DNA of 64,000 bases, taken from contig NW_026782406.1 of the NCBI RefSeq assembly GCF_031769215.1, positions 186,001-250,000 on the forward strand, given 5' to 3'. Below are positions 1 through 59,805 of the stretch, one piece after another; the stretch's first letter is position 1, and every line of letters begins with the position of its first letter. A program made the position numbers and the translations under genes. Below the pieces are notes generated by a model that saw nothing but the letters and a program-made list of their open reading frames with translations, searched no databases and was not told where the DNA came from. This DNA is from Ylistrum balloti (lineage: Eukaryota).

Positions 1-677
1 AATTATTTTATATTTTGATAAAGAGAAACGATTGCCTATTGTTTAAATGTTACTTGATTGGGAGAGTAAGATGCACCCTGAAATTAAAAGTAATGCGAGT
101 ATTTTTGTATACATAAAGTAAAGTTAATGAAAACGTCTGCATACAACAGTGTACTAAACTTGATCTTTTATCTATAGGTGGTGGTGAAGATTCCACAGAA
201 GAATTCGTAAGGCATCGCTTGTGTGTATGAAAGCCGACGATAAGTACATCTGCTGTACAAATATCATCCTGCTTCCTAGTGCGAACTATATGGATCTCAA
301 ATATACACTGGATATGATTTGATAACTTTGTATCGGGCATCCTATATAAAAATCATCATTTTCGTTGCGTAAAGATTTTTTGCAAGCGTTAAATAAAATT
401 ATTGTACCGTCAAAACTTCATACTACTGTCTTGTGTTTCATTGTTAGATGATTTTTCATTAAATATAAAAATGCAGTGACGGATAATATGTCATTCACGT
501 GTCGTTATATTTCGCCCTGTCATTCCTTCATCTGTAACAATTACTCTGCTGATAGAGATAAGTATTGTTTCATTGGTTCATTACTTCCTATTACAAAAAT
601 TTGCATGATTGCACAAAAGTGAATAACATTATATAATACAAATTAAGATACAATAGTGTAAAACAATGGATTAAACT

Positions 678-1035
678 GCATCCTACAGCTGTTTCGTCCT
701 TCTATGACTCGTCAGTGATGCTACATCATACAGCTGTTTCGTCCTTCTAGGACTCGTCAGTGATGCTAAATCATACAGCTGTTTCGTCCTTCTAGGACTC
801 GTCAGTGATGCTAAATCATACAGCTGTTTCGTCCTTCTAGGACTCGTCAGTGATGCTACATCATACAGCTGTTTCGTCCTTCTAGGACTCGGCGGTGATG
901 CTACATCATACAGCTGTTTCGTCCTTCTAGGACTCGTCAGTGATGCTACATCATACAGCTGTTTCGTCCTTCTAGGACTCGTCAGTGATACTACATCATA
1001 CAGCTGTTTCGTCCTTCTAGGACTCGGCAGTGATG
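678..1035 (-). ncRNA. Tandem array (8 x 45 bp) of minimal type I hammerhead ribozymes
   Basis: Minus-strand unit CATCA-CTGACGA-GTCC-TAGAA-GGAC-GAA-ACAGCTGT-A-TGATG-TAG gives stem I / CUGANGA core / stem II hairpin / GAAA / palindromic stem III / GUA cleavage triplet / stem I'. Six of 8 units keep both CUGACGA and GAAA. Units 856-900 (CCGCCGA) and 991-1035 (CTGCCGA) have core mutations. Confidence 0.9.
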
Positions 1036-2269
1036 CTAAGGCCTTGCAATGGTCCTGTAATGCACCAATTTTGTTAATCACATATATCTGATAATTTTAG
1101 ATAAATGTTAAGTACCTTCTATCAATTAATTGGTATTAATTGGTAATTATCATATTTTTATTTATTTATTTTCACGCTTGAATTCTACCCTGAAACATAT
1201 AACATCCCTAAAATCTAACCATCTTCATAGAATGTGTTTTTCTCTCTGAGTTATTGTATTATAGTGTTCAGTTTGGGTGTTATTGGTGTGGAGTTTAACA
1301 ATGACAAAACCAAGTATTTCAAATCTCTGACCATCTTGATTTGAAAATGGCATGTGCAGTTTAAACAGAAGCAGGGTTAGACAATTTTGAAATTGAAAAA
1401 TAAAAGAATAAAAAAAGAGTACAAACAAATAAACATAGCCTTTGTTTAAACCCTATTTGAAGCTGCGAATGTTTAAAAAAAATCAAAAAAATCTCAGTAC
1501 CAGTAAGAAAATCTATTTGGGACGTTTCGATGACTACACTATAAAATTACTGACCTGAAGAGTATGTTTCGCAATTACTTCAACGATGATTGACCTAAAG
1601 ACACGCAGGTGAAAACCACCTTCAGTTAAGATTTTTGTTACAGCTGATGAATAAAGATGGATCCTGTATATAACTGGACAGCTAATCATATCTGTATACA
1701 GTATTTCAACACAGAACATCTGAACCCTTTTAACTCTGTATACCTTACATTGATCCTGCTGAAGGATGGCCATGCTATCTGTAGTTCTCTGTTTGTCAGA
1801 GGTTAGACTATGTGGGGGTACAAGATGAACAGCTGAATAGCATACCACATACACGGATAACTAAGATTTCCCTACCTCCAGCTGACTAAGTAATGCAAAT
1901 ACAACGTTTAGATAAATAACTGACCCTTCTGCTGATTTCAAAAGCAGGTGTACTTTAAAGATATTTTGCACGTATAGAATGAAATAAAATCTAGTATATC
2001 ATATCTTTTGTCTCTGTGTATGTCCTTTATTCTGTGAACCACCAAGTCGTTATAATGTCAATATATAGTAAATTCTTAGGATCTTTATTGACTGCCATTT
2101 TCATATGAACCTTATTATTCACTAATGCTTCTCGCATAATACCAACAACAATTTACACATCAAACAGATCATAATTGTGGCAAATTACGTAAATGTTTCA
2201 CTACAATCCAATAAGAAACATGTGATGTGTTGAACAGACATGAATGATCCAGATTTGGCGATAACAGAA

Positions 2270-4136: not shown

Positions 4137-7100
4137 ATGTCTGCAAAGCAACCAAGGCAGGTGAAGGGTTTTACAGTTATTAAAGTACCGATTCATGGTA
4201 AGTGTCATTTCAATACACATTCAAATATTTCAGGCAAGTTCTTTTTAACGTCTATCATACACGTATAATTCTCTAGATTTGTTTACACCGTAGTAGCGGT
4301 CATGTTTAGGATCGTTTGTAAAATTAGAAATCTAAATGAAGAACTGGTGTAGTGTGGAGTACGTTTTCATTCAGTAGAATAGAGGCACGATTCATAATAT
4401 ACACATATACTTGATGGTATAAAAGTAAATTGGTCTAAATCACACACATAAAATTACAAACTTTATTACATTATGGTGCTAGTGTATCTTCACATGTTTT
4501 TTTAATCACTTTGGATTTTCCTCAGTCGCGAGTTTTCGAAGTTAGTATCACTGACAGGTTTTAGAACGAAAACACTTTAGGTATAAATCGTGATATTTGT
4601 CTTGATTACTTGATTTAGAAAGGTGATATAACTTATCAAAGTTATATTGTTAGATATCAAATATTGAATAATTTTATTGCAATACAACCATACAACATTA
4701 AAAATTACCAAGATTATTTGGAAAGTATACATTCTTTGTATTATTGTTGAATATAAATTTAAGTCACTTTTGATTTCCTTCAGTTGATTTCCAAATTAAA
4801 ACATTTCAGTTCTCACTGAATCGCTGACGAATACTAGAAAGACAAAACGGTTATATGATGGAGTTTAATTAATAAATTGTTTTACTCCACTGTATCTGAC
4901 TAATATCTATTCGAAGATTCTGTTACCGATTGTGTCTTTTAATCAATTCTACATTTAATCTAAATTGATGTCATAACTTATACTTATGGTACAAACGTTC
5001 TAAACTAAACCATTAATGCTAACTACCCAGCAAGATAACACAAAAACTAAAAATGAAGTTAACCTTCACTACAGGATTTACTACGTGTGTAATAGATACA
5101 ATGCCATTGTTTGTATTTAAACTGTTATAGATATTCTGTGGAATTAGTTTACCTGAGTTACCAGGTTTAAACATTGAGTTGATAATTAATCTAAACTTTT
5201 ATTTGTGTTTTCGTTAATTGAAAGGTGTCTTTTAACCTTTTTTATTCCTCTGATGTGATGATAAATATAATCAACAGGAGATGACACACAAACTGCTTCC
5301 ACCCTTGCCAGCACCATTCATGGTCAACCACTTGTGATACAGTGGATGAAACGACCCCAGTCATTACCCGGATGTCCACCAGGCCTGGAATACCTCACCA
5401 ACGTGGATAGTCTCGTTGTCAAACAGCAGATGGAGAATCTAGAAGGTGTTGTTATTGCATTTACCTTACACAGGTTAAAGTGTATTGTTATGCATTCAAT
5501 AGTGAATGAAACAGTCATATCACCTTCATGAAACCAGTTATAAGTAAGGAAATGAACCGTAAACTTACAAGTTTCGAGATGGCAATATTTTCTGTAATAT
5601 GCGCTGAAATAATTGATGATTTGATAAAAAAGATATATTAAATTCGTTTCCGTTTCATGTGTCATTAATGAAGCTCGTTTTCTGCGACCTAAAATGAAAA
5701 CTTTTTATACCCGTTACTGATAGTGTATAGTGTCACACAGATCTAGACAAGAACGACTTGTGTTGAGTCCTTAACAATTGTTTGTAAATAGTAGAGAATT
5801 ATGATTTATTGTATTATACGGGTTGTGTCGCTCTTTTATCTGTACTTGCTACACAAAAATAGACATGGGGTTGTGATATAAAACAAAGGATGATCATTTT
5901 AATAGGGCATTTCTTCAACTGCTGTAGAGGTTGGTTTTTTGGAGGTAGCGAACTGCTTAGAAAAAATTGATAAGTTTAAACAAAAGTAAACAATCATTCC
6001 ATAGTATAAATCATACAGAAATAATGTTGTGTAATATGATCCTCTTTGTACAAGGAAAAACTTTACACATTATTAGAGGTATGGTGTTCGGACGATTGGC
6101 TTGTGATCAATGGGTCACAATTCGATTACCGACGCGGACACCTTGTATCTTTAGACAACATACCTGACTCTTATAGTTCCAGCCCACTACGTTGTAAATC
6201 AGTACAAGGTTGGTCAGTCCTGGCCCCATTTGTATAAAACATCTCAACTTGAGATTTCCTCAAGTCGAGATTTTCCTCAGCTGATATCTCCTCAAAATTG
6301 GTTTGTATAAAATTTTCTCAAGGAACAGGAGGAAGTCATCGGCTAGGATGTCCTGAAATTCCTTGAGGAATTTTCATACAAGATATTTTCAAGGAGATAT
6401 TAGCTGAGGAAAATCTCGACTTGAGGAAATCTCAAGTTGAGATGTTTTATACAAGTGGGGCCTGGACATGTTGTTAAGGTTGCAATATGTCAGCGGCAAA
6501 AACATCTCCGGCTTGGACTTTAGGAAGAATACTGCTATTATCACCAAGAAACAAAATTAAGGACCTCGCTAATGATTGATTTATCAACAATGTAATATAT
6601 TTGATAGTAGATCAAAAGTCTATGTAGTATTAGAAAGTTATATAATAACGGAATGTGCAAATCAAGGCAATCATAGAACGAAACTTAAAAGAAATTCAAA
6701 TACACCAGACGTATGACAGCATTAGTCTTGTACCTTTTAATTTTGCAGTTTTCACAGGTTGGGAGGCTGCTAACAAATACAAAATTCTAAATAGCCAAGG
6801 ACAACAAGTATATTTTGCAGCGGAGGGTGAGTAGATGTATTTTTAAAAACACATCCCAAGACAGGTATATCCTCGCTTTTCGCCAGTGTGATATTTTCTT
6901 GTTTAACCCCAAACAGGTATATATCCACGCTTCTCACCAGTGTGAGATTGCCTTGTTTTACCCCAAACAGGTATATAACCACGCTTCTCACCAGTGTGAG
7001 ATTGCCTTGTTTTACTCTAAACAGGTATATAACCACGCTTCTCACCAGTGTGAGATTGCCTTGTTTTACTCTAAACAGGTATATAACCACGCTTCTCACC

Positions 7101-10100
7101 AGTGTGAGATTGCCTTGTTTTACCCCAAACAGGTATATAACCACGCTTCTCACCAGTGTGAGATCGTCTTACCTTAAACAGGTATATCTACGCTTCTCAC
7201 CAGTGTAAGATTGCCTTGTCTCTTGGAATGGTTATCTGATACACCTAGACTTGGATGGTATTTTGCAAAATGGAATGATATGATGGTTATGAGGTTCTTA
7301 CTTAGGAATATGTTATTCAAGATGGCAAATGTAAACGGTAAGACAGCAGTCTTGTCGTTTCTTCGTCACTTACGTGATAATAATGTAACATGTTCCGTAC
7401 ATTTAAACAGAACATTTGGATCGAAATTGCTAACCATTTACTGTAAATGTGGTTATTATCTTTGATTAATATTTGACATTTCCAAATTCATGAGAACAAA
7501 ATCATAAATTGGAAATAATAAAAGCTTACATTCTTCACTGTAATGTTGTTTTTCTCAGTTTTATTCCATACTTGAAAAAGCTATAAGAACATGAATTTAT
7601 AGCGTATCAGGCCCCATAAAATATTAGCCTACTTCTTTAACATTGAACACCTAATACTGTCTTCTTCATATTTCTTGATATCATATTGACAGAGTCTGGC
7701 ATGTGTGAGCGTCAATGCTGTGGGTCGAACCGTGGATTTTCTCTCCATATCACAGACAATACTGGGCAGGTTGGTAGGTTACACGTCTGCACAGCAAGGT
7801 AAACAATTCGTTGACATATGCAAATAGGTGGTATCTCATGAGTGAAGGTCATAGATACAAGCGGGAAAGGGATGTGTGATTTCTTTCCCCTATCCAGTAA
7901 GTTGACCAATCCCTCAGGAAATACATATGAAGATGAAAGTTTCTTGGCAATGCCAAGGAGTAAGACTGTTAATAGTCGGAAACGAATAAATAAATGAATT
8001 TCTTTTTTATTATTAAATTTATGTGGAATCAAGAAAAACACTCGAAGACCGTCTGTGGCTTTATATCATGATTTCCATGTACATTTGTCCTCTAATCTGT
8101 TTATATGAAATGTAATTGCTGTTATGAAAGATTTCGTTGTTTCAATCAACAAGTTCATTACTTTTCTTCATTTTTTCTACTTCCGTTTGTTTCAACGCAT
8201 GCCTTTATGTATGTTGGTAGGAGATCATTAAGTGTGTTCGGGATTTTAAGTGCTGTGTCGGATTCTGCTGGCTGGCTAACTTTGACGCTTGGGCCCATGA
8301 GATAGCAGTCGAGGCCCCAGTGGGGACCGTTGTTGGATATGTCCGTCAGGAGTACGTACCATATAGAAGTCTTTTACAGATTTTGTAGGAACAGTATCAT
8401 TAAAAAAATAGCCAAACAATGTAACGTTTTTTAAAAAACGATTAATTACTTTTTGTAATGTATCAGTAAAAAAAACCCAAGAAAACGCGATGCAACAAGG
8501 ACAAAATATGAACAAAAGAAAGACGGAGACGCTTGAAAAAGTACAAGGAGAACAAGACCAGATGTTCCGTAAGAGTAAGCGTCATTTGCTTCATCGTTGA
8601 CACAAGCCATATAAATCTTGCTCAATCTAAAAAGGTAATGTCACGTTCTCAAATTAGAGCAAACTATATAACAACGGAAACAACAAACAAACACGCCCAG
8701 CTTCACATCGCACAAAGAAATGTAATATTTTCCAATGAGATTACTATGGAGAAAATAAAACCATACCTTTCATCAAATTGTGTTATTTGAAAGTATGGAC
8801 TGACAGGTCTTAGAAGGCTTTAAGTGTTGTTTTATATGCACTACATATAAGAAAGCATTGATTTATGACTTATTCGTACAAAAGCCACACGTCACATCTA
8901 ACCAATGTGTAAACTACCCGTGCCTAAGTCTCTTTAAACACTTACAGAATAGGTGTGAGTGGACGTTGAAACTGTAACCAACAAACCAACTTTAACTATG
9001 TTCTCTTTAAGGAATATCGTGGTACTAACTTCAATTGACAATGATCTTCATGGCGGGTGTCGTCGATGAAGCAGTAGACGCTTACTCTTCCAGAACATTT
9101 TATCTAATTCTTGTATTACTGTCCGTTTAACTCTCCTGTTCTTCATATGTTTCATCGAATGGGTTTGAATGAAGAGTCTGTGGTCTTATAGGTATTTTCT
9201 TTGATACCTATATCCTGTTCACAATCTTTCATTTTGTTTGTGCTTCAGGCGTAGTTTTTGGACTCCACATTACAGCATCAGAGACGCCAATCGGGACTTG
9301 GTGTTCAATATTAAAGGGCCTTGTTGCGTGATGAATGGCTGTTGTTGGGACCAGGAGTTCGTTGTAAGTATTGCTTTAAGTGTAAAGGTCAAATAAGAAT
9401 AAATGTCATAGCATAAGATAGTGTCAACAAGGTAATCAGCATTTTACTTGTATTTTTTCTCTTTATAAACAACTGGAATAGTGCCTGGTCTATGTCGCTC
9501 GATCCATTACTCCTATAGTAAAACTATTGTATACGAGTGTTTGATTAAGAAAGAGGCGCCTGCTAGATGAATATATGATGTCAATTTGAGAAGGTGTGGT
9601 GATCAAAGATAATCTAATCTTAATTTATAACGGTGTTATGGAATCTGATTGAATGCATTAGAAGGTTGATAAAATGATAAATGCCATAGTTCCATATCAG
9701 GTACTGTACGACGGTCATATAAAAGCTTGTTATAAGGTTGTACTTTCAATTTGTTTGAGCTCACCTGGTCTAAAGGATCGGTGTGCTTATGTCATGGCGC
9801 GGCCTCCTTCCGATGACCATCAACTTTTTATTTCCTTAGATCATTGTTAAGGATGACAACAACCATATAAGATATATAAAACTATATTTCTACGCGTTAT
9901 CCTACACACAGGTGTGGTCTAAAGACTGGACGGAAGAAGTTGGAAAGATAAATAAGAAGTGGGGCGGCTTTACGAAAGAACTCTATACAGATGTGGATAA
10001 TTTTGGAATAAATTGTAAGTTTTTTACTTTGCCTTACCATAAATTGGTGATACATACTTGATTTAGTTTGGATGTCATGAACTTGGTCTGATTTAATCTG

Positions 10101-27163: not shown

Positions 27164-28669
27164 TTATTTGTGAACCATTTCCTCACCAAAGTCGTACATT
27201 TGTATAGCATTTCTTGTTCCAATGGCAAAAGTATTGTTATCGAATGCTGTGATGGATACGCCTTCACACTTAATCTTACATGTGTACCCTTTTGAGTGAG
27301 GGTCTTCTATGTCAACCGCAAATAATTTCTTATTATTGCACAGACAAACAACAAATTTATTCATATAACAAATATCGATCGGATTTTCTTGTTCTCTTAA
27401 GGTTACACCGGTAACTGGCTTCAATCTCTCAGTAAAGATGATAATTTCTTTTCTGTCTGCCATTCTTGGCACTTGTTTGATGCGTAGCACTGCAAGATGA
27501 TTCGAAGAACTCTGTAGGATCTTGATCGGGCTAACCGTGGGCATCGTGGGTAAGAATAATGAATCCTCATTGAATTTGTACATTTGCTTTCCATCAGTAG
27601 TATACATGATAATCCCGTAAGCTGTACCAACAACAATGGTTTCTTGTCTGGTGTGGCACAGTGCCATTGGTTTATGTTGTACAAAGAATCGTATGACTAC
27701 TGTTTGTGGCAGAATCACTTCCCGAATACTTTTGTCTCCACCAGAAATCCAAACATTGTTTGTAACAGGGCAAACACACAATCCTGTTATGTGAACAAAA
27801 CAATTAAGGCTGTGAATGACCTTTCCGGTTTTATCAAGTCTAAGAATGGACACTTCGTCTTTGCAAATTATCCAGAATGTACCATTTCTACCAGCACATA
27901 AGCCTATCGATTCAGCCTCGTGTGGTATATGGGACTTAAATGCGAACATCCTTTTTTCTTTGTTTTTCCGCCTAGGTGGAATTTTCTGGGTAGTTGCCGT
28001 GTTTTCAAATGTATCCTCGTTGGTTTCTACAGATAATTCACCACATAATTTTTTAAGCTTGTCTGTTGTATTAGTACATTTTTGAAATGATAGGGAAATC
28101 AGTTTGGACGGCGCTGGAATAACAGGCATGTTGATATCATCTTCCATCCAGAATACTCTAATATCAGTTCCATGCGTAATTGTTTGTTTACATTTTGACA
28201 GATAATCCTGAAATGTCGCAACTTGAGACTGCAATTTAGACTTGCACTGAAGAAGTGCATCTTTGTTCTGTTTTCCAGCAGAAACACAACGAGCAACTTT
28301 CTCCCGGGTGATCTCGTCAATAAGTTTTATGTTGAAACCTGCGTTATGTCGAATTTCCTCCGACATTGACTGCGTTTCTTTTGCATTCTGAAGAAGTTTG
28401 CTGTTAATCTCATCATCAGAAGTCAGATCTTCACACATTAGTTCAAGTGATTCTATGTGGTTCAACAGTTTCTGTTTTCTCTCTATGACTCGTGAGGCAA
28501 GTAGATCGAGACTGTGCCCTTTGTGGATCGAAGTGACACATTCAGTACATGCGAACGGTCGCTTCTCCGATTTACATTCTTCACATACGTATAAAATAGG
28601 TTTCCCGCCATGATGCCTACACCCGGTGGATGTTTTGTCTCCATCAATGTGTCCTGAAGCCTCGGCCAT
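27164..28669 (-). CDS. RING-less TRIM-like protein: B-box zinc finger, coiled coil, C-terminal NHL-like beta-propeller, 501 aa, intronless CDS
   Basis: Long uninterrupted ORF. N-terminal CRHH...YVCEEC...FACTECVTSIHKGH (B-box2 pattern), a helical heptad-rich middle, and C-terminal repeats such as HITGLCVCPVTNNVWISGG, PMALCHTRQETIVVG and PIDICYMNKFVVCL. Confidence 0.88.
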   Translation of the reverse strand: MAEASGHIDGDKTSTGCRHHGGKPILYVCEECKSEKRPFACTECVTSIHKGHSLDLLASRVIERKQKLLNHIESLELMCEDLTSDDEINSKLLQNAKETQSMSEEIRHNAGFNIKLIDEITREKVARCVSAGKQNKDALLQCKSKLQSQVATFQDYLSKCKQTITHGTDIRVFWMEDDINMPVIPAPSKLISLSFQKCTNTTDKLKKLCGELSVETNEDTFENTATTQKIPPRRKNKEKRMFAFKSHIPHEAESIGLCAGRNGTFWIICKDEVSILRLDKTGKVIHSLNCFVHITGLCVCPVTNNVWISGGDKSIREVILPQTVVIRFFVQHKPMALCHTRQETIVVGTAYGIIMYTTDGKQMYKFNEDSLFLPTMPTVSPIKILQSSSNHLAVLRIKQVPRMADRKEIIIFTERLKPVTGVTLREQENPIDICYMNKFVVCLCNNKKLFAVDIEDPHSKGYTCKIKCEGVSITAFDNNTFAIGTRNAIQMYDFGEEMVHK

Positions 28670-31110: not shown

Positions 31111-33599
31111 AACAAAGTTTCATTAACACTTAACTAAAGGTCAAAAGTGTTGCACTTTTAGGAGAGACAGTAGGAAGAGGAAAGGTCTTTACAAAGAGAG
31201 AAAAATATAAAGATTCCAAGTTATTTTTTTACAATCATGCATTGGGGACAGTAGGTACTTTTCCTACGTATGCACGTATGTATGTGGATATGAAAACACC
31301 TTATCTAACTGTAAAAGGAATTCCTGGATTGAAGCAAATTTAATACTATCTGAACACATGGCTCATATTGTGTAAGCTAAAATAGTTCGAAAAAACAACG
31401 TGAAAATGAAGCGGGAGTACAAAACAACAGGAAAAAAAGACTGACTGCAGAATATCAATTGAAATTCAAAACTGTAACTGTGGCAAAACATAAACAGATG
31501 AAAAAAGGTCACTCCTGAAAAGGAATAAGAGAAAAAGATCAGGTGTTCTGGATAGGTAAGCATTGACAGAGAACATAGCAACAATTCCGTATAATAAAAA
31601 AATAAAAAAAATAAAATGAAATTATATTTAGCCACAGAAATAGTGTCATTTTGCATGTCATTCACAACATCATTCAGGTGGAATCACTTACATATGAATA
31701 AAGTTCATCCTCGAATTTAACATCATAACACATAAATGTGAGTCGAAGATAATAAATTACACCCGCTATTTCACTGCGTAAATTTCAAGAACCGGCTCAA
31801 GTATAAATGCATTTTTTTTCTCGGTTGGCATCACTTTGCCTCTTTTCTTTAGTGTTCTACAGAATTACCTTCTGATTTCCGTAAATATTTCAATTAAAAA
31901 TATTTCGCTGAAAATATTTAACTTAAATATCGATAGATCCTTAAAGAAACGGTTTTGTTTCTTGTAATAAACAAGTTTAGTGTATTAATATGCATGCCTT
32001 ATTTTGACTCAAATACAATGTGAGTTTTCTGAAGTGAAATATACCTATTGATAATCTGATTCAACATACTGTTATAGCTACATCATTCTGATTGCTTTTC
32101 GAATTTTGAATTGAGTTATACAGTTACAAATCACGTACAAATGATACCCGGTCGACGCATACATTTTCTGTCCTTTCGATGCAATTAAGATAATTACTTC
32201 TCTACTCCGTATTGTATGTGTCAGCATAGTGTTATCAGCAGATAGCATAGTAGGAAACTGTGAGTTACGGAGAGGGACGTTAACTACTTTTCATTTCATA
32301 AAGAAATTAATAGCACAAGTCTGGAATCGTTATTAATTTCACATTTCCTCTAGCGTGATTAAAAGAAAAATTGAAGACGGGATTATGTAATGGTTGTCAT
32401 GCAACTAATAAGGTGTAGTTACGTGATTAAAGAGGAATGATGAAAAAAAGTATTAATCAACAAGGAACCGGAAAGCGTGGGTGGTATGTCTCCTGTTGTT
32501 GGTATCAACGTCCAAACACTGTTTTTGTCACGATTAAACCCTAAACTTCTACCTGGTGTTCCCGAGATTGTCTCCTGTTGTAGTGAAATATCTGATGTGA
32601 CCGTGGCTGCATTTAAGCGGAATATGGTAATACCCATCATACTGAACATTTGAAACAAGATAAACAAATATACTCACAATCGCCATCTTCCTCCAGAGCG
32701 AATTCAAAATACCTAGTAGAATTTCTTATACTGCTTCAACTATGATCACTTGATGTATAAGTTTGTTGATTTTTCTTCTGTAAAATCTAAACGGATATTT
32801 TCTGATGGTGGAAACTTTGATAAAAGAAGCAGTTCATTTATACAAAATTAATGGAAGAATTGAAATTCTGATATAGCTAATATTTTTTTTTATATATATT
32901 TTTTATTTAATCATTTAAAAAATATACCTTTAAGATAAGAAGCATTGGTCAATTATATTTGTTTTTGTTAGTTAGCGTATAAAAGCTATTTCATAAAATG
33001 TCGCCAAACTCTTGTTTCTACAACCTGACTGAGTTGAAATGTGCTGTACGAAATCATGTCCCCTAGCTTTCTCGCGACAACCTGAGTTGAAATGTGCTGT
33101 ACGATAAATGTCCTACCATTGTGTCAACAACCTGAGTTCAAATATGCTGTGCTAAACAATGTCGTCCTAACTTTTTGTTAACAATCAATTTACTGAAGTG
33201 TTAGAATCTGTTCTTTATCTGTAGAAACAATACCCGATAGAACATTTTACCTATTCATGTCTTCAATTAACACCCCTTACATATCCTAACCCATTTCATA
33301 TCATATCATATCATATTCATATATATCAGCTGCTCTTTTAAATAAAGATTTTTCCATCACGTCCATGTGTCGTTGTTTGTGCTGACACATGTCGGTATGT
33401 CAAAAAGAATGATCTACAATGAAAATTCCGAATGAAGCGAACACTTGATTTGGTGCATTTTTCATTGTGTACAATTGTCAAGTTGAAGGTAGGCTAATTT
33501 TACTGACGAATTGCTCATCCGAGTTAGATTTTGACATTTCTTTCAATCACGTTCGTTTTTCCTCTGTCGTCTCCTAGGTTTAAACATTAAGGCCCTTGG

Positions 33600-33630
33600 C
33601 ATCACTGATGAAGCACTCATATGGTGCTGT
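33600..33630 (+). ncRNA. Inactivated hammerhead (stem II variant GCAC-TCATATG-GTGC; GAAAC segment missing)
   Basis: CATCA-CTGATGAA-GCAC-TCATATG-GTGC-TGT. The family 5' flank aggcccttgg is present and GAAACAG is absent. An identical copy is at 48368-48398. Confidence 0.55.
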
Positions 33631-33765
33631 TTTACTGACTATTTGGTTGTACTTTGTCTTGTATGTGTATTAAAAGGTGTTTAATTCACTTGTGTTATTT
33701 AACAAGTACTTGGCACTTTTCTCAAATTATCTTCGCTTTGTAGCCCTCAAAATTTAGGCCCACAA

Positions 33766-33807
33766 CATCACTGATGAGTCCTAGAAGGACAAAACAGCTG
33801 CATGATG
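33766..33807 (+). ncRNA. Single 45-bp-family hammerhead unit (inactive)
   Basis: catcaCTGATGAgtccTAGAAggacAAAAcagctgcatgatg has G12 changed to A and the triplet GCA instead of GUA. Confidence 0.8.
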
Positions 33808-37800: not shown

Positions 37801-40800
37801 GACCAGGTTTTATCAACGACTCCCGCCATGTTAATTATGGTCAATCAAAGTAAGTGATGCACTTCATTAAATGAGAACTTGGTGTATAACAACTGAATCA
37901 ACATACAAACTGACAAAATTCCTAGTTTCATATCAAACAAATAAATAAATAGGAAATTTCTCATTCAGATCGCTTTGACGATAGTGAAACGTCCATATAT
38001 TATCACCAACCTGCATCTTTTGTGACCTGTGTAATGAATTTGTCGGTTGATATCTTGCACCAAAATATATTGGAGCAATCAAATTCATATCTAAAATTCC
38101 TCGTATTATAACTTATACCACGACTAATATATAAATTCTTTTGTTAAAGGACTTGAAATTTGTAGCCACTGAACCGATGGAAGGATTTTTGAAAACCCTG
38201 AGAGAGCAATGCCCGGATGTGACCTCGACCCAGTGCGCCGCCACATCTTTGCCATTTCCTGATAACTCGATTCAGGTGAGTTAAATACCTATATATATTT
38301 TATTATTCCTAGATTAATCAAACAGGCTAGTTAATTAAAGACGGAGTCTACCATTTCCTGATATCTCAATACAGGCCAGTTAATTAAAGACGAAGTCCAC
38401 CATTTTCTGGTAGCTCAATACAGGCCAGTTAATTAAAGACGAAGTCTACCATTTTCTGGTAGCTCAATACAGGCCAGTTAATTAAAGACGGAGTCTACCA
38501 TTTCCTGGTAGGTCAATACAAGCCAGTTAATTAAAGACGGGGTCTACCATTTCCTGGTAGGTCAATACAGGCCAGTTAATTAAAGACGAAGTCTACCATT
38601 TCCTGGTAGCTCAATACAGGCCAGTTAATTAAAGACGAAGTCTACCATTTCCTGGTAGCTTAATACAGGCCAGTTAATTAAAGACGAAGTCTACCATTTC
38701 CTGATAACTCAATAAAGGTCAATGTTTCCGAACAACGTAGCAACTCAGTGTTTTCATGTAATGATATTTCAGAGCGTTGTGGCAGCTCAGTGTTTTCATT
38801 GGTTTATATTTCAGAGCATTGTGTCGGCTCAGTGTTTTCATTGGTTTATATTTCAGAGCGTTGTGGCAGCTCAGTGTTTTCATTGGTTTATATTTCAGAG
38901 CATTGTGTCGGCTCAGTGTTCTCATTGGTTTATATTTCAGAGCGTTGTGGCAGCTCAGTGTTTTCATTGGTTTATATTTCAGAGCATTGTGGTGGCTCAG
39001 TGTTTTCATTGGTTTATATTTCAGAGCATTGTGGTGGCTCAGTGTTCTCATTGGTTTATATTTCAGAGCATTGTGGTGGCTCAGTGTTCTCATTGGTTTA
39101 TATTTCAGAGCGTTGTGGCAGCTCAGTGTTTTCATTGGTTTATATTTCAGAGCATTGTGGTGGCTCAGTGTTTTCATTGGTTTATATTTCAGAGCGTAGT
39201 GGCAGCTCAGTGTTTTCATTGGTTTATATTTCAGAGCATTGTGTCAGCTCGGTGTTTTCATTTGTTTATATTGTAGTGCGTTTAGGCAGCTCACTGTTTT
39301 CATTGGTTTATATTTCAGAGCGTTGTGGCAGCTCAGTGTTTTCATTGGTTCGCTAACGAGACTTCAATGAGAGAAATAACCAGGGTCCTGAAGCCCAATG
39401 GCAATTTCAGTATGTTAGTAGATATATCTGGAAACCTATGTCAATTAATCAGGAGCTATTGCTTTCGCTAAAGATTTGTTAAGTTACCCATAAAAGGTAT
39501 ATAATGATTTTCGTAAAAGATGTCGACAGCTTTCAGTTGAACAACCCCGCAAAGGGATTAGAGAGGTTCATGAGGAATATGGTAAAATTAGATTATCAAC
39601 ACCATTATCTAATATGAAATTCTTCCGTTCGATTGCGCGCATTTGGGAATGTGATATTTCGTTATTGTATTGACCAAGATTTACTTAACACATCTTCTCG
39701 ATGAAGTAGAAGACACTTACTCTTCCGGAACACATTGCCTTGTTATGCTTCTACTACTTCAAAACTCTTTGTGTTAAAATTTCTTTTATTCGTGTATTGG
39801 CCTTATCGCATCAATTTCAATAATGAATGTACTTTTTTTTGTTGTTAATAAGCCCGTTCATTATTACGACCGCTCGAGACAGAAGAATATAAATAATCGT
39901 TTTTACCTCTACTACTATTAAGTTGATAACACTGACATTTAAAAACGCTTCTGCCATGTCTTTGCTACATGTAACTGAGATCTGGTTTATGCAATTGTTA
40001 GAACAAATACATCTGAATGCGTAATGTAGGGTCTACCACTGTGTATTACCTAATCAAGCTCAATGTTTCCTTCTTCACAGTTCTAGTGTGGAACATACAA
40101 GACGTAAGTGTTGACTGGGTTGACGCAGTCACCAAAAAAGCACTGACCTTCTTCGGTGATGAACCACAGTATCTCAAGTTTTGGTGGAAAGACGCAATAG
40201 ATGCCTTTCCTGGGCTTAGACTTAAAATCAGGAAGAAGCTGAACTATCCTACTGCGGAGGTATGAACACATTAACTATTACGAGATCAAAAACCAAATAA
40301 TTTATTGACATTAAGTGATATGGCATATGTGCAATAGGTAAATGAAATATATAGAAACAAAACGGAACGGTACCATTAAATAGCTTCATTAAATATAATT
40401 ATATCTTATAGAAATAATATTTTAAGTTAGTTCTGTACAATATTTTGCAAAGTGTGACGCTTGCGTGCATTATCCATGCTCTTTAATGTTAGCAAATAAA
40501 GCCGACTGAGAGCACTGGAAGTGCCAGAATAAATAAACGTAGATGACTATGCTGGTTTCCAAACATGAAAATATGTAGAGATCTGTATGTTCGCTGTTCC
40601 ATCTTAGACACAAACACTACAGAAGTGTTAGGGTAATGCTACAGTAACATTATGGAAGTACTAGGAAAATGCTACAGATGACTAGGATTACAATCTTGCG
40701 AACCAAACAGTTTATCTATAAACAGACATTATATAACAACCTATGAAACTGGTGTATGTTTATATGGTTATTGTAAAACCATAAAATTTAAAGCAACTCA

Positions 40801-42490: not shown

Positions 42491-42999
42491 TATTTTTCAT
42501 ACTGATTTCAATTCTACAATATCGAGCTTTTCATTGATCATTCATTTATTTAATTGTATTAAAAATATTCATCCTAATTTATTTCTCGTTATTGTGCAAA
42601 AATTGAAATGATCTCTCAAAATCTGAATTAAAAGATAGATAAAAGTTGTACCGCAAGGTAATCATAAAAACCGAATCATGTCGGATGTTCATACTGCAGG
42701 AATCGGAGGCAGCCGAAAACATAAAAGTATCCACTAAAAATAGTCTTACTCCAACCACAATGATTATATATCTTTTTCATTAAAAACAATCTCCTTGTAT
42801 ATATTAAAACAATGTAATGATACCGTGTTATTAATTTACAATTTCTAATGAAACCGACATTAAAGACGGATATACTTGCTTTCTTTGTCGGTGCCTGTGT
42901 AACTTGGAGTAACGGAGTAATGATTATGCTGAATTTAAGACGATAATATCGTGCTATCACAGTGAAGCATACTGCTGAAAGCCCTCCACAAGATACCCC

Positions 43000-44510
43000 A
43001 ACCGGTAACATTACACTGACAACAGGTGTCCCAGTCGTTACTCTACCACACTGATGTATACTTCAGAAGGCCTCTAGCAGGACACCCCACCCTGTCACAT
43101 TACACTGACAACAGGTGTCCCAGTCGTTACTCTACCACACTGATGTATACTTCAGAAGGCCTCTAGCAGGACACCCCACCCTGTCACATTATACTGACAT
43201 CAGGTGTCCCGGTCATTACACTACCACACTGATGTATACTTCAGAAGACCTCCAGCAGCACGCCCCACCCTGTCACATTATACTGACATCAGGTGTCCCA
43301 GTCATTACACTACCACACTGATGTATACTTCAGAAGACCTCCAGCAGCACACCCCACCCTGTCACATTATACTGACATCAGGTGTCCCAGTCATTACACT
43401 ACCACACTGATGTATACTTCGGAAGGCCAGGACACCCCACCCTGTCACATCATACTGACAACAGGTGTCACAGTTGTTACACACCACCCTGTCACATTAT
43501 ACTGACATCAGGTGTCCCTGTCGTTACACTACCACACTGATGTATACTTCAGAAGACCTCCAGCAGCACACCCCACCCTGTCAAATTATACTGAGAACAG
43601 GTGTCCCAGTCGTTACACTACCACACTGATGTATACTTCAGAAGGCCTACATCGGGATACCCCACCCTGTCACATTACACTGATAACAGGTGTCCAAGTC
43701 ATTACACTACTGCCCTGATGTATACTTCAGAAGACCTCCAACAGCACACCCCACCCTGTCACATTATACTGACAGCAGGTGTCCCAGTCATTACACTACC
43801 ACACTGATGTATACTTCAGAAGGCCAGGACACCCCACCCTGTCACATTATACTGACAACAGGTGTCCCAGTCATTACACTACCACACTGATGTATACTTC
43901 AGAAGGCCAGGACACCCCACCCTGTCATATTATACTGACAACAGGTGTCACAGTTGTTACACCACACCCTGTCACATTATACTGACATCAGGTGTCCCAG
44001 TCATTGCACTACCACACTGATGTATACTTCAGAAGACCTCCAGCAGCACACCCCACCCTGTCACATTATACTGACAACAGGTGTCACAGTTGTTACACCA
44101 CACCCTGTCACATTATACTAACATCAGGTGACCCAGTCATTACACTACCACACTGATGTATACTTCAGAAGGCCAGGACACCCCACCCTGTCACATTATA
44201 CTGACAACAGGTGTCCCAGTCGTTACACTACCGCACTGATGTATACTTCAGAAGACATCCAACAGCACACCCCACCCTGTCACATTATACTGACAACAGG
44301 TGTTCCAATCGTTACACTACCACACTGATGTATACTTCAGAAGACCTCGAGCAGGACACCCCACCCTGTCACATTATACTGACATCAGGTGTCCCTGTCG
44401 TTACACTACCACACTGATGTATACTTCAGAAGACCTCCAGCAGGACACCCCACCCTGTCACATTATACTGACAACAGGTGTCCCAGTCGTTACACTACCA
44501 CACTGATGTA
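43000..44510. repeat. About 89-bp satellite (roughly 17 units, with shorter variants) derived from a SINE-like segment
   Basis: Unit caggtgtcccagtcattacactaccacactgatgtatacttcagaagacctccagcagcacaccccaccctgtcacattatactgacat. ORF-track starts recur every 89 nt. The unique flank 42950-43040 is a diverged copy of the same unit. Confidence 0.95.
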
Positions 44511-45285
44511 TATGTATAAGTACTCCTGACTGCCTAGATTTCATGTTTCAAATTAAATTTTTTTTTCAAAATTCAGGCCCTAAGTATCACTGCGAATCCA
44601 AAACGGACGAAACCGCAAGAAAAGTTCTCAGATAGGACTACCATGAAATACGTTTGAAATCTGCGGTAATGAAGTTTCACATTTTGGTTTAGTGTCGGTG
44701 TTTAGCAACCCCCACTCATGTTTTTATTCAGTGATACTTATAAGTTTATATAAATCATGTATTTGATTTCCCCATTTTCATATGACTAAAACCATGCTGT
44801 GTTTCTCATGTTGATCATCATTATGTCTATGTATTAATGCGTTTGCAAAATGCATTAAATGTCACAATTTGAGTTGGCTTTCTAATCGGAAGTGAAATAT
44901 ACCTGTTATACCATGCTGTTACACTATAAAGCTACATTATTGTGATTGCTTTTTTTTATTGGGTTATCCACTTACAAATTGTGTACAAGAATAAATAGGG
45001 CCGGGAGTGTGTAACGGTAACATACAGCATATAACGGTGTTGCTATGTAATGAAAAAGGAAGAATGAAAGAAGTGGTAGTCGACAAGCGTGGGTGGAATG
45101 TCTCCTGTTGTTGGTCTACACTTCCAAACAGACTGTTTTTGTCACGATTAAACCCTAAACTTCTACCTGGTGTTCCCGAGATTGTGTCCTGATGTAGTAG
45201 TGAGATATCTGATGTGACCGTGGCTGCATTAATGCGGAATATGGTAATACCCATCATACTGAACATTTGAAACAAGATAAACAAG

Positions 45286-45479: not shown

Positions 45480-45760
45480 CACCAAATTCTTGTCTGAACA
45501 GCCTTAGCTGATTTGTGTTGTACGACAAAATGTCGCCCTACCTTTGTCTCGACATCCTGACTTAGCTGAAATATACTCTACGACAGAATGTCATCCTACC
45601 TTTCTCTCGACAACCTGACTGAGTTGATAGGTACTGTACGAAACCATGTCGCCCTACCTTTGTTTTCAACAACCAGACTGAGTTGAAATGTCCTGTATGT
45701 TAAAATGTTGTTATACTTTTGTCTCAAAACCTGACTGAGTTGAAATATGCTGTACGAAAC
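45480..45760. repeat. About 57-bp degenerate minisatellite (about 5 copies; about 3-4 copies in the paralog at 33000-33190)
   Basis: Recurrent gacaacctgactgagttgaaat.tgctgtacgaaaccatgtcgccctacctttg. Confidence 0.8.
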
Positions 45761-47605: not shown

Positions 47606-48607
47606 ATGTATTTTTGCTTTGTGATAGCCACAATCAACACAATCACATCGTACAAACAATCACTTAAAATTCCGCCGACATAAGCTCATAATCCACATCG
47701 CGTGATAACACTTACATTATACGATGTACAGGTGAATATGAACCACTGGCGAGGCATTAATTAGCTGATATCGCACGGTCCAGGTTATCAGGCCGAGGTC
47801 TACAAGTTATTACCAGCCGTGCGCCAATATGATCGACCAAGATCTCATAACTTTTATGATAGTAAAGCCACTTTCATTAACCAAAGGTGAATATTTTGAC
47901 ACATAAATATTAACGACAATTAATATATATAAAGTCGTTTTTAATAAGTATTTTCCCCCGACTGAACAACACTACGATCATTACTGTAGTTATGAAGGCA
48001 GAGAAGCGCCTATTGCTGGGGGCACAATGTTCTCATCATTCCTATCATTGTTTTGCTGAAGTGTTAGAATTTGTTCTTTATCCGTAGAAATAATACCTGA
48101 TAGAACATGATACCCGTTTATGTCTTCAATAAACACCCCTTACATATCCTTCCACAGTTTTCTATCAGTTGTTCTTTTAAACAAAAAATCTTCTCTCAAG
48201 TCCATGAAGCGAACATTTGATTTGGTGCATTTTTCATTGTGTACAATTGGCGAGTTGAAGGTAGGCTAATTTTACTGACGAATTGCTCATCCGAGATTTT
48301 TACATTTCTTTCAATCAATTTAGTTTTTCCTCTGTCGTCTCCTAGGTTTAAACATTAAGGCCCTTGGCATCACTGATGAAGCACTCATATGGTGCTGTTT
48401 TACTGACTATTTGGTTGTACTGTACTTGTATTAAAAGGAGTTATTCGCTTGTTTATCTAAACTGTTCTTAAATTATCTGATATATAAAAATAACGAAATG
48501 TATTAAATCATTGAGCTAGTGCATCTCCTGTCTAGATTTTGACTTTCCTTTCGGTCACTTTTGATTTTCCTCAGTCGCTTTGTCGCCTTCAAACTTTAGG
48601 CCCTTAA

Positions 48608-49728
48608 CATCACTGCTGATTCATAGAAGGACGAAACAGCTGTATGATATAACATCACCGCTGAGTCCTAGAAGGACAAAACAGCTGTATGATGTAACAT
48701 CACTGATGAATCCTAGAACGACAAAACAGCTGTATGATATAACATCACTGACGAGTCCTAGAAGAACGAGACAGCTGTATGATATAACGTCACTGATGAA
48801 TCCTAGAAGGACAAAACAGCTGTATGATATAACATCACCGCTGAGTCCTAGAAGGACAAAACAGCTGTATGATGTAACATCACTGATGAATCCTAGAACG
48901 ACAAAACAGCTGTATGATATAACATCACTGACGAGTCCTAGAAGAACGAGACAGCTGTATGATATAACGTCACTGATGAATCCTAGAACGACAAAACAGC
49001 TGTATGATATAACATCACTGACGAGTCCTAGAAGGACAAAGCAGCTGTATGATATAACATCACCGCTGAGTCCTAGAAGGACAAAACAGCTGTATGATGT
49101 AACATCACTGATGAATCCTAGAACGACAAAACAGCTGTATGATATAACATCACTGACGAGTCCTAGAAGAACGAGACAGCTGTATGATATAACGTCACTG
49201 ATGAATCCTAGAACGACAAAACAGCTGTATGATATAACATCACTGACGAGTCCTAGAAGGACAAAGCAGCTGTATGATATAACATCACTGACGAGTCCTA
49301 GAAGGACGAGAAAGCTGTATGATATAAGATCACTGATGAGTCCTAGAACGACAAAACAGCTGTATGATATAAGATCACTGATGAGTCCTAGAAGGACAAA
49401 ACAGCTGTATGATATAACATCACTGATGAGTCCTAGAAGGACAAAACAGCTGTATGATATAACATCGCTGATGAGTCCTAGAGGACAAAACAGCTGTATG
49501 ATATAAGATCACTGATGAGTCCTAGAAGGACAAAACAGCTGTATGATATAAGATCACTGATGAGTCCTAGAAGGACAAAGCAGCTGTATGATATAACATC
49601 ACTGACGAGTCCTAGAAGGACGAGACAGCTGTATGATATAAGATCACTGATGAGTCCTAGAACAACAAAACAGCTGTATGATATAACATCACTGACGAGT
49701 CCTAGAAGGACAAAACAGCTGTATGATG
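48608..49728 (+). repeat. Tandem array (25 x 45 bp) of the hammerhead unit, catalytic core mutated in every copy
   Basis: Units start at 48608, 48653 and so on to 49687 (one unit is 44 bp). The first unit has GAAA but CTGCTGA. The remaining units read AAAA, AAAG or GAGA in place of GAAA. A 4-5-unit higher-order periodicity is present. Confidence 0.95.
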
Positions 49729-51639: not shown

Positions 51640-51692
51640 TATCATACAGCTGTTGCCTCCTTATAGAACCCGCCATTGATGCTAAAGGCCTA
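51640..51692 (-). ncRNA. Highly degenerate hammerhead-unit relic
   Basis: Minus strand aggcctttagcatcaatggcgggttctataaggaggcaacagctgtatgat retains the family flank, stem I and the palindrome; the core is destroyed. Confidence 0.6.
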
Positions 51693-52734: not shown

Positions 52735-53725
52735 GGTTGTTTTGGTCCCTGTCTGTATATTTACATGGTAAGGGTTGTTTTGGTCCCTGTCTGTATATTT
52801 ACATGGTAAGGGTTGTTTTGGCCCCTGTCTGTATATTTACATGGTAAGGGTTGTTTTGGTCCCTGTCTGTATATTTACATGGTAAGGGTTGTTTTGGTCC
52901 CTGTCTGTATAGCCTACACGGTAAGGGTTGTTTTGGTCCCTGTCTGTATATTTACATGATAAGGGTTGTTTTCGTCCCTGTCTGTATATCCTACACGGTA
53001 AGGGTTGTTTTGGTCCCTGTCTGTATATTTACATGATAAGGGTTGTTTTGGTCCCTGTCTGTATATCCTACATGGTAAGGGTTGTTTTGGTCCCTGTCTG
53101 TATATTTACACGGTAAGGGTTATTTTGGCCCCTGTCTGTATATCCTACACGGTAAGGGTTGTTTTGGTCCCTGTCTGTATATTTACATGGTAAGGGTTAT
53201 TTTGGCCCCTGTGTGTATATCCTACACGGTAAGGGTTGTTTTGGCCCCTGTCTGTATATCCTACACGGTAAGGGTTGGTTTGGTTCCTGTCTTTATATCC
53301 TACATGGTAAGGGTTGTTTTGGCCCCTTTTTGTATATTTACATGGTAAGCGTCGTTTTGGTCCCTGTCTGTATATTTACATGGTAAGGGTTGTTTTGGTC
53401 CCTGTCTGTATATTTACATGGTAAGGGTTGTTTTGTCCCTGTCTGTATATCCTACATGGTAAGCGGCGTTTTGGTCCCTGTCTGTATATTTACACGGTAA
53501 GGGTTGTTTTGGTCCCTGTCTGTATATTTTCATGGTAAGGGTTGTTTTGGCCCCTGTCTGTATATCCTACACGGTAAGGGTTGTTTTGGTCCCTGTCTGT
53601 ATATTTACATGGTAAGGGTTGTTTTGGTCCCTGTCTGTATATTTACATGGTAAGGGTTGTTTTGGCCCCTGTCTGTATATCCTACACGGTAAGGGTTGTT
53701 TTGGCCCCTTTTTGTATATTTACAT
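52735..53725. repeat. 38/39-bp minisatellite, about 26 copies, partly alternating (77-bp dimer)
   Basis: Units ggtaagggttgttttggtccctgtctgtatatttacat (38 bp) and a variant ending tatatcctacac (39 bp). ORF-track starts recur every 77 nt. Confidence 0.95.
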
Positions 53726-55029
53726 AGAGCTGTGTACATATATGTAGTGGTGGATTATTAAAAATAATGCACGGTTATAAGTTATTATACATATCAGTAT
53801 CAGCGAAATTTGCAATAAGATCACGTTTTTACTGAATAAACACAAATTTGCGATATAACCGGAGAAAAGCAGCTACCACATAGTACTGTTCATTATTTTG
53901 AATACAGATTCCTTTCAACTGTCCAGTTTAATGAACCTGGGAAAATGTTGTGCGGGGACAAGTTTTAGGAGCATGAATGCTGCTCCCAAATTTTGGAACT
54001 CTTCAGTGTTTTCATAGAATAAACAACAACAGTAACTAATAAACTACATAGACTGAACACGGCCTTAATCTCTACCAGAGTTGTCACACACTAACAGTGA
54101 CAATGCTACTGGTTTACTCTGGAAGGGATTAGCACGGCCTAATTAACACCTTTACGTACTGGTAATGGTGATATTGCTAAAACTATATCTCTTATGAATA
54201 CACTAATGAGCCACGGACTTGGGAGTAGCATTAACTCTCATGGACAGAGATTTCATTGTTATCAAAAGTGTTGACAAGTGCTTTCCAGACAAGTCTATCC
54301 GAAACAAATATTTCCGTCTGTTTCTTTTCTACACGTAGTGCGGTGTTATATATCATCTATTTTATTCTAGATAAGTTTATATGTGCGTGATGTTGTGTAT
54401 CTCAATACCTTTGTAATAATCTTGTCGCAGGTGCTCTTTCTAGTCATAATTGCTGTGTTTCCGCCATTAGACATTGACTACTTACCTTGTGAAACATTAT
54501 CCGAAACTTGTTACAATTCAGAAACACGCCATAATAATTATTATTATAAAAAACCCTTTTTATCTACAGAGGCAATGTCCTAAAATAACAAGTCGTAAGA
54601 CTTGCAAATTATCACAGAAAGGGAAATCTCCTTTATTATTTTGTATTAAGCAATAACTTACACTTTTCCATTTCTGAGTAATTCTATCTTAAATATTGTA
54701 ACACAAAAAGTAATTTGACAACAGTTAGAGCCAATGGAAACTATCTCTCCATATAAAAATTAAACAGAATATACACATCAAGTTGACATTGATATCAATC
54801 TAAAAATAACTTTTACGAAATGCACTTTTGAAAATACGACTGTCAGCAAATTACCTGTGACTGTAGTTTTTTGCTTTGTAGCTGAGAACAACATTTACAC
54901 TGTATCCAAAATGTGGTCCGGGTACGGCAAGGTCTTCACAGGTCTATCAACTCCATTTGTGGGAAACTTGTGACCCTAGATCACTGAGACATAACCCAAA
55001 TCATAGAGTAACGTTCCAACAGCTAACCT

Positions 55030-55465
55030 AGAGGTTAAACATTCAAATAACTACAAGGTTAGGCCAACCTTGTGTACCATTAGTCCAACATTAGTGCGAC
55101 AATTACAAGGTTACAATCAACCTAGATGTTTAATAGTCAAATAACTACAAGGTTAGGCCAACCTTGTGTACCATGAGTCCAACATTTGTGCGACAATTAC
55201 AAGGTTACAATCAACCTAGATGTTTAATAGTCAAATAACTACAAGGTTAGGCCAACCTTGTGTACCATTAGTCCAACATTTGTGCGACAATTACAAGGTT
55301 ACAATCAACCTAGATGTTTAATAGTCAAATAACTACAAGGTTAGGCCAACCTTGTGTACCATTAGTCCAACAATAGTGCGACAATTACAAGGTTACAATC
55401 AACCTAGATGTTTAATAGTCAAATAACTACAAGGTTAGACCAACAATGTGTACCATTAGTCCAAT
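55030..55465. repeat. 94-bp tandem repeat, about 4.5 copies
   Basis: caaataactacaaggtt starts at 55044, 55138, 55232, 55326 and 55420. Confidence 0.95.
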
Positions 55466-58774: not shown

Positions 58775-59805
58775 CAGTCAAGTTACAAGCTTGTGTCCTA
58801 GTTATCAGTCAAGTTACAAGCTTGTGTCCTAATAACAAGTCAAGTTACAAGCGTGTGTCCTAGTAATCAGTCAAGTTACAAGCTTGTCTCCTAGTTATCA
58901 GTCAAGTTACAAGCTTGTGTCCTAATAACAAGTCAAGTTACAAGCGTGTGTCCTAGTAATCAGTCAAGTTACAAGCTTGTCTCCTAGTTATCAGTCAAGT
59001 TACAAGCTTGTGTCCTAATAACAAGTCAAGTTACAAGCGTGTGTCCTAGTAATCAGTCAAGTTACAAGCTTGTCTCCTAGTTATCAGTCAAGTTACAAGC
59101 TTGTGTCCTAATAACAAGTCAAGTTACAAGCGTGTGTCCTAGTAATCAGTCAAGTTACAAGCTTGTCTCCTAGTTATCAGTCAAGTTACAAGCTTGTGTC
59201 CTAATAACAAGTCAAGTTACAAGCGTGTGTCCTAGTAATTAGTCAGGTTACAAGCTTGTGTCCTTGTAATTAGTCAACCTTATTGGTAAGAGAGTGTGAC
59301 CAGTCAAGTTACAAGCTTGTGTCCTAGTAATCAGTCAAGTTACAAGCGTGTGTCCTAGTAACCACCCAAGTTACAAGCGTGTGTCATAGTAACCAGCCAA
59401 GTTACAGGCTTGTTTCCTAGTAATCAATCAAGTAACAAGCTTGTGTCCTAGTAAACAGACAAGTTACAAGCTTGTGTTCTAGTAATCAATCAAGTAACAA
59501 GCTTGTGTTCTAGTAATCAATCAAGTAACAAGCTTGTGTCCTAGTAAACAGAAAGTTACAAGCTTGTCTCCTAGTACTCAGTTATGTTGCAAGTGTGTGT
59601 CCTAGCAATCAGTCAGGTTACAAGCTTGTGTCCTAGTAATCAGTCAAGTTACAAGCTTCAGTCCTAGTAATCAGTCAAGTTACAAGCGTGTGTCCTAGTA
59701 ACCACCCAAGTTACAAGCGTGTGTCATAGTAACCAGTCAAGTTACAAGCTGGTGTCCTAGTAACCACTCAAGTTATAAGCTTGTGTCCTAGTAATCAGTC
59801 AACTG
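58775..59805. repeat. 31-bp minisatellite, about 33 copies, with a 93-bp (trimer) higher-order repeat
   Basis: Unit cagtcaagttacaagcttgtgtcctagtaat. Variant triplets recur at 58801, 58894 and onward to about 59230. The leading flank cttattggtaaga.agtgtgaccagtc is repeated at about 59278. Confidence 0.95.

Follow-up and report, generated by a model that had tools for sequence, protein, structure and literature searches.

A 45-bp tandem repeat made up almost wholly of a predicted hammerhead ribozyme, carried by a dispersed element in Ylistrum balloti

The window, which is the whole 64-kb stretch of Ylistrum balloti DNA that was analysed (64,000 nucleotides of contig NW_026782406.1), contains five copies of one dispersed element, comprising two tandem arrays and three single decayed hammerheads with flanks and register in common. 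The first of the arrays, array 1, is placed by Tandem Repeats Finder at positions 679-1038, with a period of 45 bp, 8.0 copies, 96% matches, and no indels. The repeat and its copy number agree with a preliminary description of this DNA, the limits of which (678-1035) are off by 1 to 3 bases. The members of the family and their immediate surroundings are as follows:

613-678, minus strand: sequence on the 3' side of array 1 (CAGTTTAAT..ATTGTTTTACACTA..ATTCACTTTTGT), with homologues in the 3' flanks of array 2 and copy D (z 4.9)
679-1038, minus strand: array 1, eight 45-nt hammerhead units, recognised by repeat finding, Rfam, unit splitting, core pattern, and folding
1039-1115, minus strand: 5' flank of array 1, in which AAGGCCT adjoins the first unit (local alignment z 5.6 to 6.7, above all 500 shuffles)
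33763-33807, plus strand: single copy B, a 45-nt unit that carries G12A and U16.1C and lies between family flanks
44582-44626, plus strand: single copy E, a decayed unit (TATCA CTGCGAA TCC..GGAC GAAAC) after CAGGCCC, with a diverged 3' part
48358-48408, plus strand: half hammerhead in the element of array 2; the same piece lies at 33590-33640 (plus strand) in copy B
48605-49728, plus strand: array 2, 25 units of the 45-bp family in the orientation opposite to array 1
51640-51684, minus strand: single copy D, one heavily decayed unit with TTTAGGCCT upstream and ..ATTCACTTGTGT downstream

Two intron-less, gene-like open reading frames (ORFs) are present elsewhere in the window, both on the minus strand. 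The ORF at 27167-28669 encodes a B-box zinc-finger protein of 501 aa. Among named proteins, its best relative comes from Pecten maximus (27% identity), and a relative with 44% identity is present on a Logan contig of run SRR19746227. The ORF at 55903-56964 encodes a 353-aa receptor of the rhodopsin family. The ORF at 2172-2549 looks spurious, and array 1 was not found to have any gene context. A protein search for arrays mis-called as genes, made with the 132-aa ORF that runs through array 1, gave no match. The window is unusually rich in unrelated minisatellites with periods of 20-94 bp and up to 34 copies (6855-7219, 38318-39350, 52735-53725, 55025-55464, 58775-59816, 60211-60521, and 62833-63150), a richness in short minisatellites that resembles repeat-rich mollusc genomes. 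The 50- and 58-bp tandem repeats at 33029-33163 and 45519-45757 are related to each other (..CTGAGTTGAAAT.TGCTGTACGA.AAATGTC..), and the former ends about 25 bp upstream of the element of copy B. An 89-bp satellite with higher-order periods of 219 and 397 bp occupies 42979-44512 and ends about 60 bp upstream of copy E; its unit has AAGGCCTCC and CACTGATG, which are faintly like the AGGCCC..CATCACTGATGA junction of the element.

Read on the minus strand, the unit of array 1 is UAG / CAUCA / CUGACGA / GUCC-UAGAA-GGAC / GAA / ACAGCUGU / A / UGAUG, which gives 45 nt. As had been proposed, each base maps to a part of a hammerhead: splitting of the unit accounts for 45 of 45 nt, 42 of them being ribozyme parts and the remainder a 3-nt linker. 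Three helices are formed, with the pairs G10.1-C11.1 and A15.1-U16.1. Helix I (CAUCA/UGAUG) has 5 bp, helix II (GUCC/GGAC) has 4 bp and is unbulged, and helix III has 2 bp and an AGCU loop when the unit stands alone or 8 bp when it pairs with the neighbouring unit. With its 4-bp helix II, 2-bp helix III, and palindromic loop, the motif matches the canonical type I hammerhead of animals. The term "minimal type I" used in the preliminary description is right for the motif and incomplete for the array, in which it is equally a near-canonical type III hammerhead.

Both core segments (CUGANGA and GAA) are intact in six of the eight units, namely those starting at 679, 724, 769, 814, 904, and 949, a count that was obtained in the unit-by-unit reading and had also been given before. 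These units carry CUGACGA ... GAA-A ... GUA, with GUA as the cleavage triplet. The other two units, 859-903 (CCGCCGA) and 994-1038 (CUGCCGA), are dead, being mutated at U4/A6 or A6. Among the six, unit 679-723 is mismatched in helix II and has G as its base 1.1, units 769 and 814 have a mismatch in distal helix I, and unit 949 has a C-to-U change by which a G-U pair is retained. Cleavage is predicted after GUA, between plus-strand positions 683/684, 728/729, and then every 45 nt; these coordinates, too, are those first proposed. Array 1 is almost certainly a real hammerhead array and, judged by its bases, would be catalytically competent on paper.

Chance does not account for the hammerhead match: 33 sites in the window fit a 31-nt pattern of the core when up to 3 mismatches are allowed, and the number expected on the basis of 100 shuffles is 0.00. 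A scan of Rfam at the default gathering threshold gave no match at array 1, since the scores of RF00008 and RF00163 fall just under their curated cut-offs; the matches appear when E-value reporting is used instead of the gathering threshold. The preliminary description had called for a search with the Rfam hammerhead models, and in this search array 1 comes close to both cut-offs and stays below them. RF00008 (Hammerhead_3) scores 48.4 bits at 871-821 on the minus strand, which is 0.1 bit short of its cut-off of 48.5, with an E-value of 1.2e-9 in the local search and 1.4e-7 in the search of the whole window. A second RF00008 match in array 1 has 45.0 bits (1006-956), and RF00163 (Hammerhead_1) scores 32.7 bits against a cut-off of 34. 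In the search of the whole window, hammerhead matches are restricted to array 1 and array 2.

The match to the type III model RF00008 is explained by neighbouring ACAGCUGU palindromes, which pair into an 8-bp helix III and make a double hammerhead. Helix I of this match is the UGAUG-UAG-CAUCA hairpin across the unit junction. According to the published work on double hammerheads, type I ribozymes of this kind are active only when two copies extend helix III (Forster et al. 1988, as cited in PMC4209133 and PMC6155905). A motif that requires a dimer finds its partner in cis in array 1, because the head-to-tail arrangement supplies the next unit. In a minus-strand transcript of array 1, pairing of neighbouring ACAGCUGU palindromes would give the 8-bp helix III and the double hammerhead, the inner ribozyme of which would have type III topology with the junction hairpin as helix I. 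The transcript would be cut after GUA each 45 nt, leaving RNAs with 5'-OH and 2',3'-cyclic phosphate ends. By this model, the spacing of the array would make the type I motif, which by itself needs a dimer, a ribozyme of type III that is self-sufficient in cis.

Thermodynamic folding, a model that leaves out tertiary contacts, gives the double hammerhead as the minimum-energy fold of an ideal two-unit transcript (-25.4 kcal/mol), and a hammerhead is also the fold of a 53-nt type III permutation (-17.5 kcal/mol). The dimer that array 1 itself contains at 724-813 is stabler than its shuffles (z -2.9), and its minimum-energy fold is a competing long hairpin. In addition, the ensemble of a three-unit transcript favours the core CUG being paired with CAG of the palindrome. 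Owing to this hairpin and the sequestration of CUG, the active fold is one of several near-equal states; it appears accessible in the model, though not dominant. On balance, self-cleavage of minus-strand RNA of array 1, if it is transcribed, is plausible and somewhat more likely than not.

The sequences around the hammerheads tie the five loci together. A segment ..TTTAGGCC(C/T) precedes the hammerhead at all five, and CAGTNTAAT..ACTACCTAT..ATTCACTTGTGT lies downstream of it at four. The module GTACTTGAC..TTCTAAAATTATC.GA.ATAT is upstream of both arrays and downstream of the hammerhead of copy B, and the module GTACTTAAC..TCTAAAATTATCAGATATATG (about 1068-1115) in the 5' flank of array 1 is common to the flanks of other family copies. 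The 570 bp upstream of copy B are ~90% identical to the flank upstream of array 2. The flanks of array 1 are more diverged yet significantly similar, with local-alignment z values of 4.9 to 6.7, and three of the four flank comparisons involving array 1 are above every one of 500 shuffles. Since they have the same flanks and register as three single-copy relatives, the arrays appear to be expansions inside a larger dispersed element. Arms and register are common to the five loci, three of which have one unit, as in a minisatellite borne by a mobile element. The view of array 1 as a satellite with a ribozyme as its unit therefore stands with respect to the hammerhead unit and fails with respect to a free-standing satellite, as all five loci share the flanks of the element. 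Alternatively, copy B could have arisen through the collapse of an array and would then not represent the ancestral single-copy state.

In two element copies, those of array 2 and copy B, the carrier has a second, incomplete hammerhead. This half hammerhead reads AGGCCC-TTGG-CATCA-CUGAUGA, followed by a different 5-bp helix II (AGCAC/GUGCU) and by GUUUUAC in place of GAAAC, is without helix III or a cleavage site, and is kept in both element copies. It sits 170-240 nt upstream of the full hammerhead, and the element therefore looks like two diverged tandem units. As defined from five copies in one 64-kb window, the carrier would be a dispersed element of diverged 170-240-bp units, each apparently headed by a hammerhead or hammerhead-like motif. 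Tandem hammerhead-headed units would, by analogy, be the architecture of a non-LTR retrozyme or a Penelope-dependent element, and there is about an even chance that the carrier belongs to one of these two types. A Pfam search of 13 ORFs, of which three have 150 aa or more and ten, close to the loci, have some 100 aa or more, gave no match to a reverse transcriptase or a GIY-YIG endonuclease around the five loci. Penelope-like elements are therefore linked with the carrier only by analogy. A tRNA-derived SINE head, as in Schistosoma Sm-alpha, was not found with ARAGORN.

None of the 24 full-length units scored in array 2 has an intact core. GAA has become AAA (G12A) in most units and GAG in several, and changes in helix II and the core are present in addition; the first (edge) unit alone keeps GAA and is broken elsewhere. 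As array 2 reached 25 units with no intact core, array growth would have taken place at the DNA level without catalysis. The self-identity of array 2 is 0.930 at a lag of 225 bp, 0.915 at 180 bp, and 0.889 at 45 bp. This 180/225-bp periodicity represents 4- and 5-unit higher-order repeats, a hallmark of unequal exchange. The three single copies have likewise decayed, and copy B, which is a close relative of the carrier of array 2, also has G12A.

Compensatory double changes in helix pairs are absent across 34 units. Most substitutions in the arrays affect the core or helices I and II, and loop 2 and the linker are invariant; this distribution, together with the lack of compensation, points to neutral decay and not to selection on the fold. 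Selection maintaining the fold within the arrays was considered and rejected on account of the uncompensated core and helix substitutions. Both G12A and the C/U change at N7 are located at CpG, in C11.1-G12 and in ACGA of the core, respectively. Because G12 sits in the C11.1-G12 CpG, G12A is expected from CpG decay after insertion, and methyl-CpG decay fits as the source of both the G12A and the N7 changes. CpG decay may be a general death route of genomic hammerheads, each copy of which has the C11.1-G12 CpG built in.

Both arrays have the same boundaries as the single units. The three bases that end the 5' flank reappear as the linker inside the arrays (TAG or TAA), as would be expected of a simple tandem duplication. 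The favoured explanation, with a probability of roughly 0.6, is that array 1 is a young minisatellite derived by DNA-level expansion of the hammerhead module of a retrozyme-like element. Growth at the DNA level inside a mobile element is, taken by itself, somewhat likelier. Tandem amplification would have been confined to the 45-bp hammerhead module within a dispersed, non-coding element, the units of which would measure roughly 170-240 bp, with ..TTTAGGCC(C/T) before the hammerhead and CAGTNTAAT..ATTCACTTGTGT after it. The 45-bp duplication and the later growth would have occurred at the DNA level through replication slippage or unequal exchange, and the ribozyme competence of array 1 would reflect the youth of the array, not selection on it.

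The arrays have also been attributed, in the preliminary description, to reverse-transcribed 45-nt circles. Self-cleavage of minus-strand transcripts would release 45-nt RNAs, these would be closed into circles either by an enzyme of the tRNA-ligase type or by the ribozyme, and rolling-circle copying by a Penelope-like reverse transcriptase would yield multimeric cDNA that integrates. The same route is the published model for animal retrozymes of 170-400 nt (PMC7229834); moreover, six of eight array 1 units are catalytically complete on paper, and the predicted double-hammerhead fold would release exactly one unit. However, array 2 expanded while dead and has higher-order repeats, and integrated cDNA multimers would be without arms, whereas neither array in the window lacks the flanks and register of the element. 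The geometry of the palindrome does not favour 45-nt circles either: when two cleaved monomers are held together by the palindrome, the 3' cyclic phosphate of each adjoins the 5'-OH of its partner, so ligation by the ribozyme would be expected, on this geometric ground, to give 90-nt dimers. The predicted 45-nt circle is poorly structured (-5.2 kcal/mol), and the 13 ORFs scanned include no reverse transcriptase near the loci. Such circles cannot start an array in any case, since two cleavage sites 45 nt apart are needed, and DNA duplication must come first. The attribution to 45-nt circles does not survive these findings well, and we consider this RNA route improbable. The same judgement applies to a smallest retrozyme in which young arrays would be cut in cis and religated, probably as 90-nt dimer circles, to serve as templates for a Penelope-like reverse transcriptase. 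If a retrozyme of this kind were true, the replicating genetic element would be the ribozyme alone, and dead arrays would be fossils drifting at the DNA level.

Alternatively, the carrier itself might be a DNA-level mobile element with conserved left and right arms, either non-autonomous and Helitron/Helentron-like or MITE-like, in which case the hammerhead would be a captured relic that has no role in mobility. Bivalve tandem repeats carried by Helitron/Helentron- or MITE-like elements are known from the oyster satellite literature. The internal array between conserved arms is in line with such a carrier, as is a window full of other short dispersed minisatellites. The two diverged tandem units, each with AGGCCC and a hammerhead or hammerhead-like motif, have instead the architecture of a retrozyme, and a DNA-level carrier is for us a doubtful reading, somewhat less so than the RNA route. 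Host exaptation, by which the arrays would truncate read-through transcripts or feed a small-RNA pathway, is very improbable. Nothing speaks for it directly, although the clean 45-nt product that is predicted would be compatible with it. Four of the five loci in the window are catalytically dead, no compensatory changes are seen, and substitutions have struck the core as well.

The monomers of hammerhead repeats and retrozymes in animals measure 150-400 nt (PMC7229834, PMC7761336), as the preliminary description also stated, and in the tandem repeats that make up retrozymes each unit has one hammerhead (PMC7229834). Array 1 resembles the animal non-LTR retrozymes of Cervera and de la Pena (2020; PMC7229834) in its head-to-tail repeats with one animal-type hammerhead per unit, its GC content below 50% (47% for the unit of the 45-bp family), its occurrence in an invertebrate genome, and its carrier units of 170-240 bp. 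Tandem type I hammerheads are thus present, while a 150-400-nt monomer with a non-ribozyme body is not: non-LTR retrozyme monomers have a long self-paired non-ribozyme body, and the 45-nt unit is a ribozyme plus a 3-nt linker. Another difference is that the sister array 2 shows amplification without catalysis.

Where the helix III of an animal type I hammerhead is short and palindromic, the ribozyme functions as a dimer within tandem repeats (PMC4209133, PMC6155905). Array 1 is similar in this respect to newt satellite 2, Dolichopoda pDo500, and Schistosoma Sm-alpha, all of which combine the type I fold, a 2-bp helix III, and a palindromic loop with tandem DNA. In these classical hammerhead satellites the repeats are a few hundred bp long and the partners are distant or on another molecule, whereas array 1 supplies the partner in the adjoining unit, at a distance of 45 nt, and an intramolecular type III hammerhead results (RF00008, 48.4 bits). 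Minimal hammerheads of Penelope-like elements and Terminons reach a very high copy number in invertebrates (PMC4209133). Array 1 shares with the hammerheads of Penelope-like element pseudo-LTRs and Terminons the palindromic helix III, the dimer requirement, and the association with repeats (PMC4209133). In contrast, Penelope-element hammerheads have a helix II of 6-8 bp with a bulged base, often lack helix III, and adjoin a reverse transcriptase or GIY-YIG ORF (PMC4209133), while helix II of array 1 is 4 bp long and unbulged and no such ORF is near the loci. Among the features of a Penelope pseudo-LTR, the palindromic helix III is the one that fits.

The 45-nt unit is far shorter than any described ribozyme-bearing repeat found in the literature. 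No description of a monomer consisting of a hammerhead alone, or of a 45-nt ribozyme-only monomer, was found there, and an earlier description may exist. The exact unit-junction pattern had 0 matches in metagenome contigs, and the pattern of the 45-bp family had 0 matches in bacterial/archaeal genome contigs and 0 in viral contigs. A relaxed two-core pattern retrieved mostly phage-like ribozyme pairs from metagenome contigs. Many environmental contigs, up to 62 kb in length, have in common two adjacent hammerhead cores at a distance of ~60 nt and, after them, ..GAAATCGAGGATAGCTACCTCG (L002, L003, L006, L007, L009-L011, L015, L016, L018, and L021). This conserved twin-core locus looks phage or bacterial.

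A further metagenome contig, Ga0126336_10171365 (L022:472-811), carries a hammerhead-only array of 56 bp x 6.1. Like that of array 1, its unit is one type I hammerhead plus a linker, here of 6-7 nt, and intact and mutated units alternate. It has a 6-bp helix I and a 4-bp helix II, and the alternation of GGAC and AGAC gives a 112-bp higher-order repeat. In contrast to array 1, with which its sequence is unrelated, its helix III is a self-sufficient 4-bp hairpin and no partner copy is needed. This unrelated 56-bp example suggests that ribozyme-only minisatellites recur in nature.

Tandem repeats that carry hammerheads define both the animal retrozymes and the classical ribozyme satellites. In the published cases consulted, the ribozyme is a small part of a 150-400-nt unit, whereas here the repeat itself is the ribozyme. 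Array 1 thereby offers a minimal system, provided by nature, for asking what the lower size limit is of an RNA unit that processes itself and possibly circularises. The pair of a live and a dead array separates ribozyme activity from array growth, and the growth of dead arrays is a caution against reading every hammerhead repeat as retro-amplified. In addition, the built-in C11.1-G12 CpG offers a simple reason for the death of genomic hammerhead copies through G12A.
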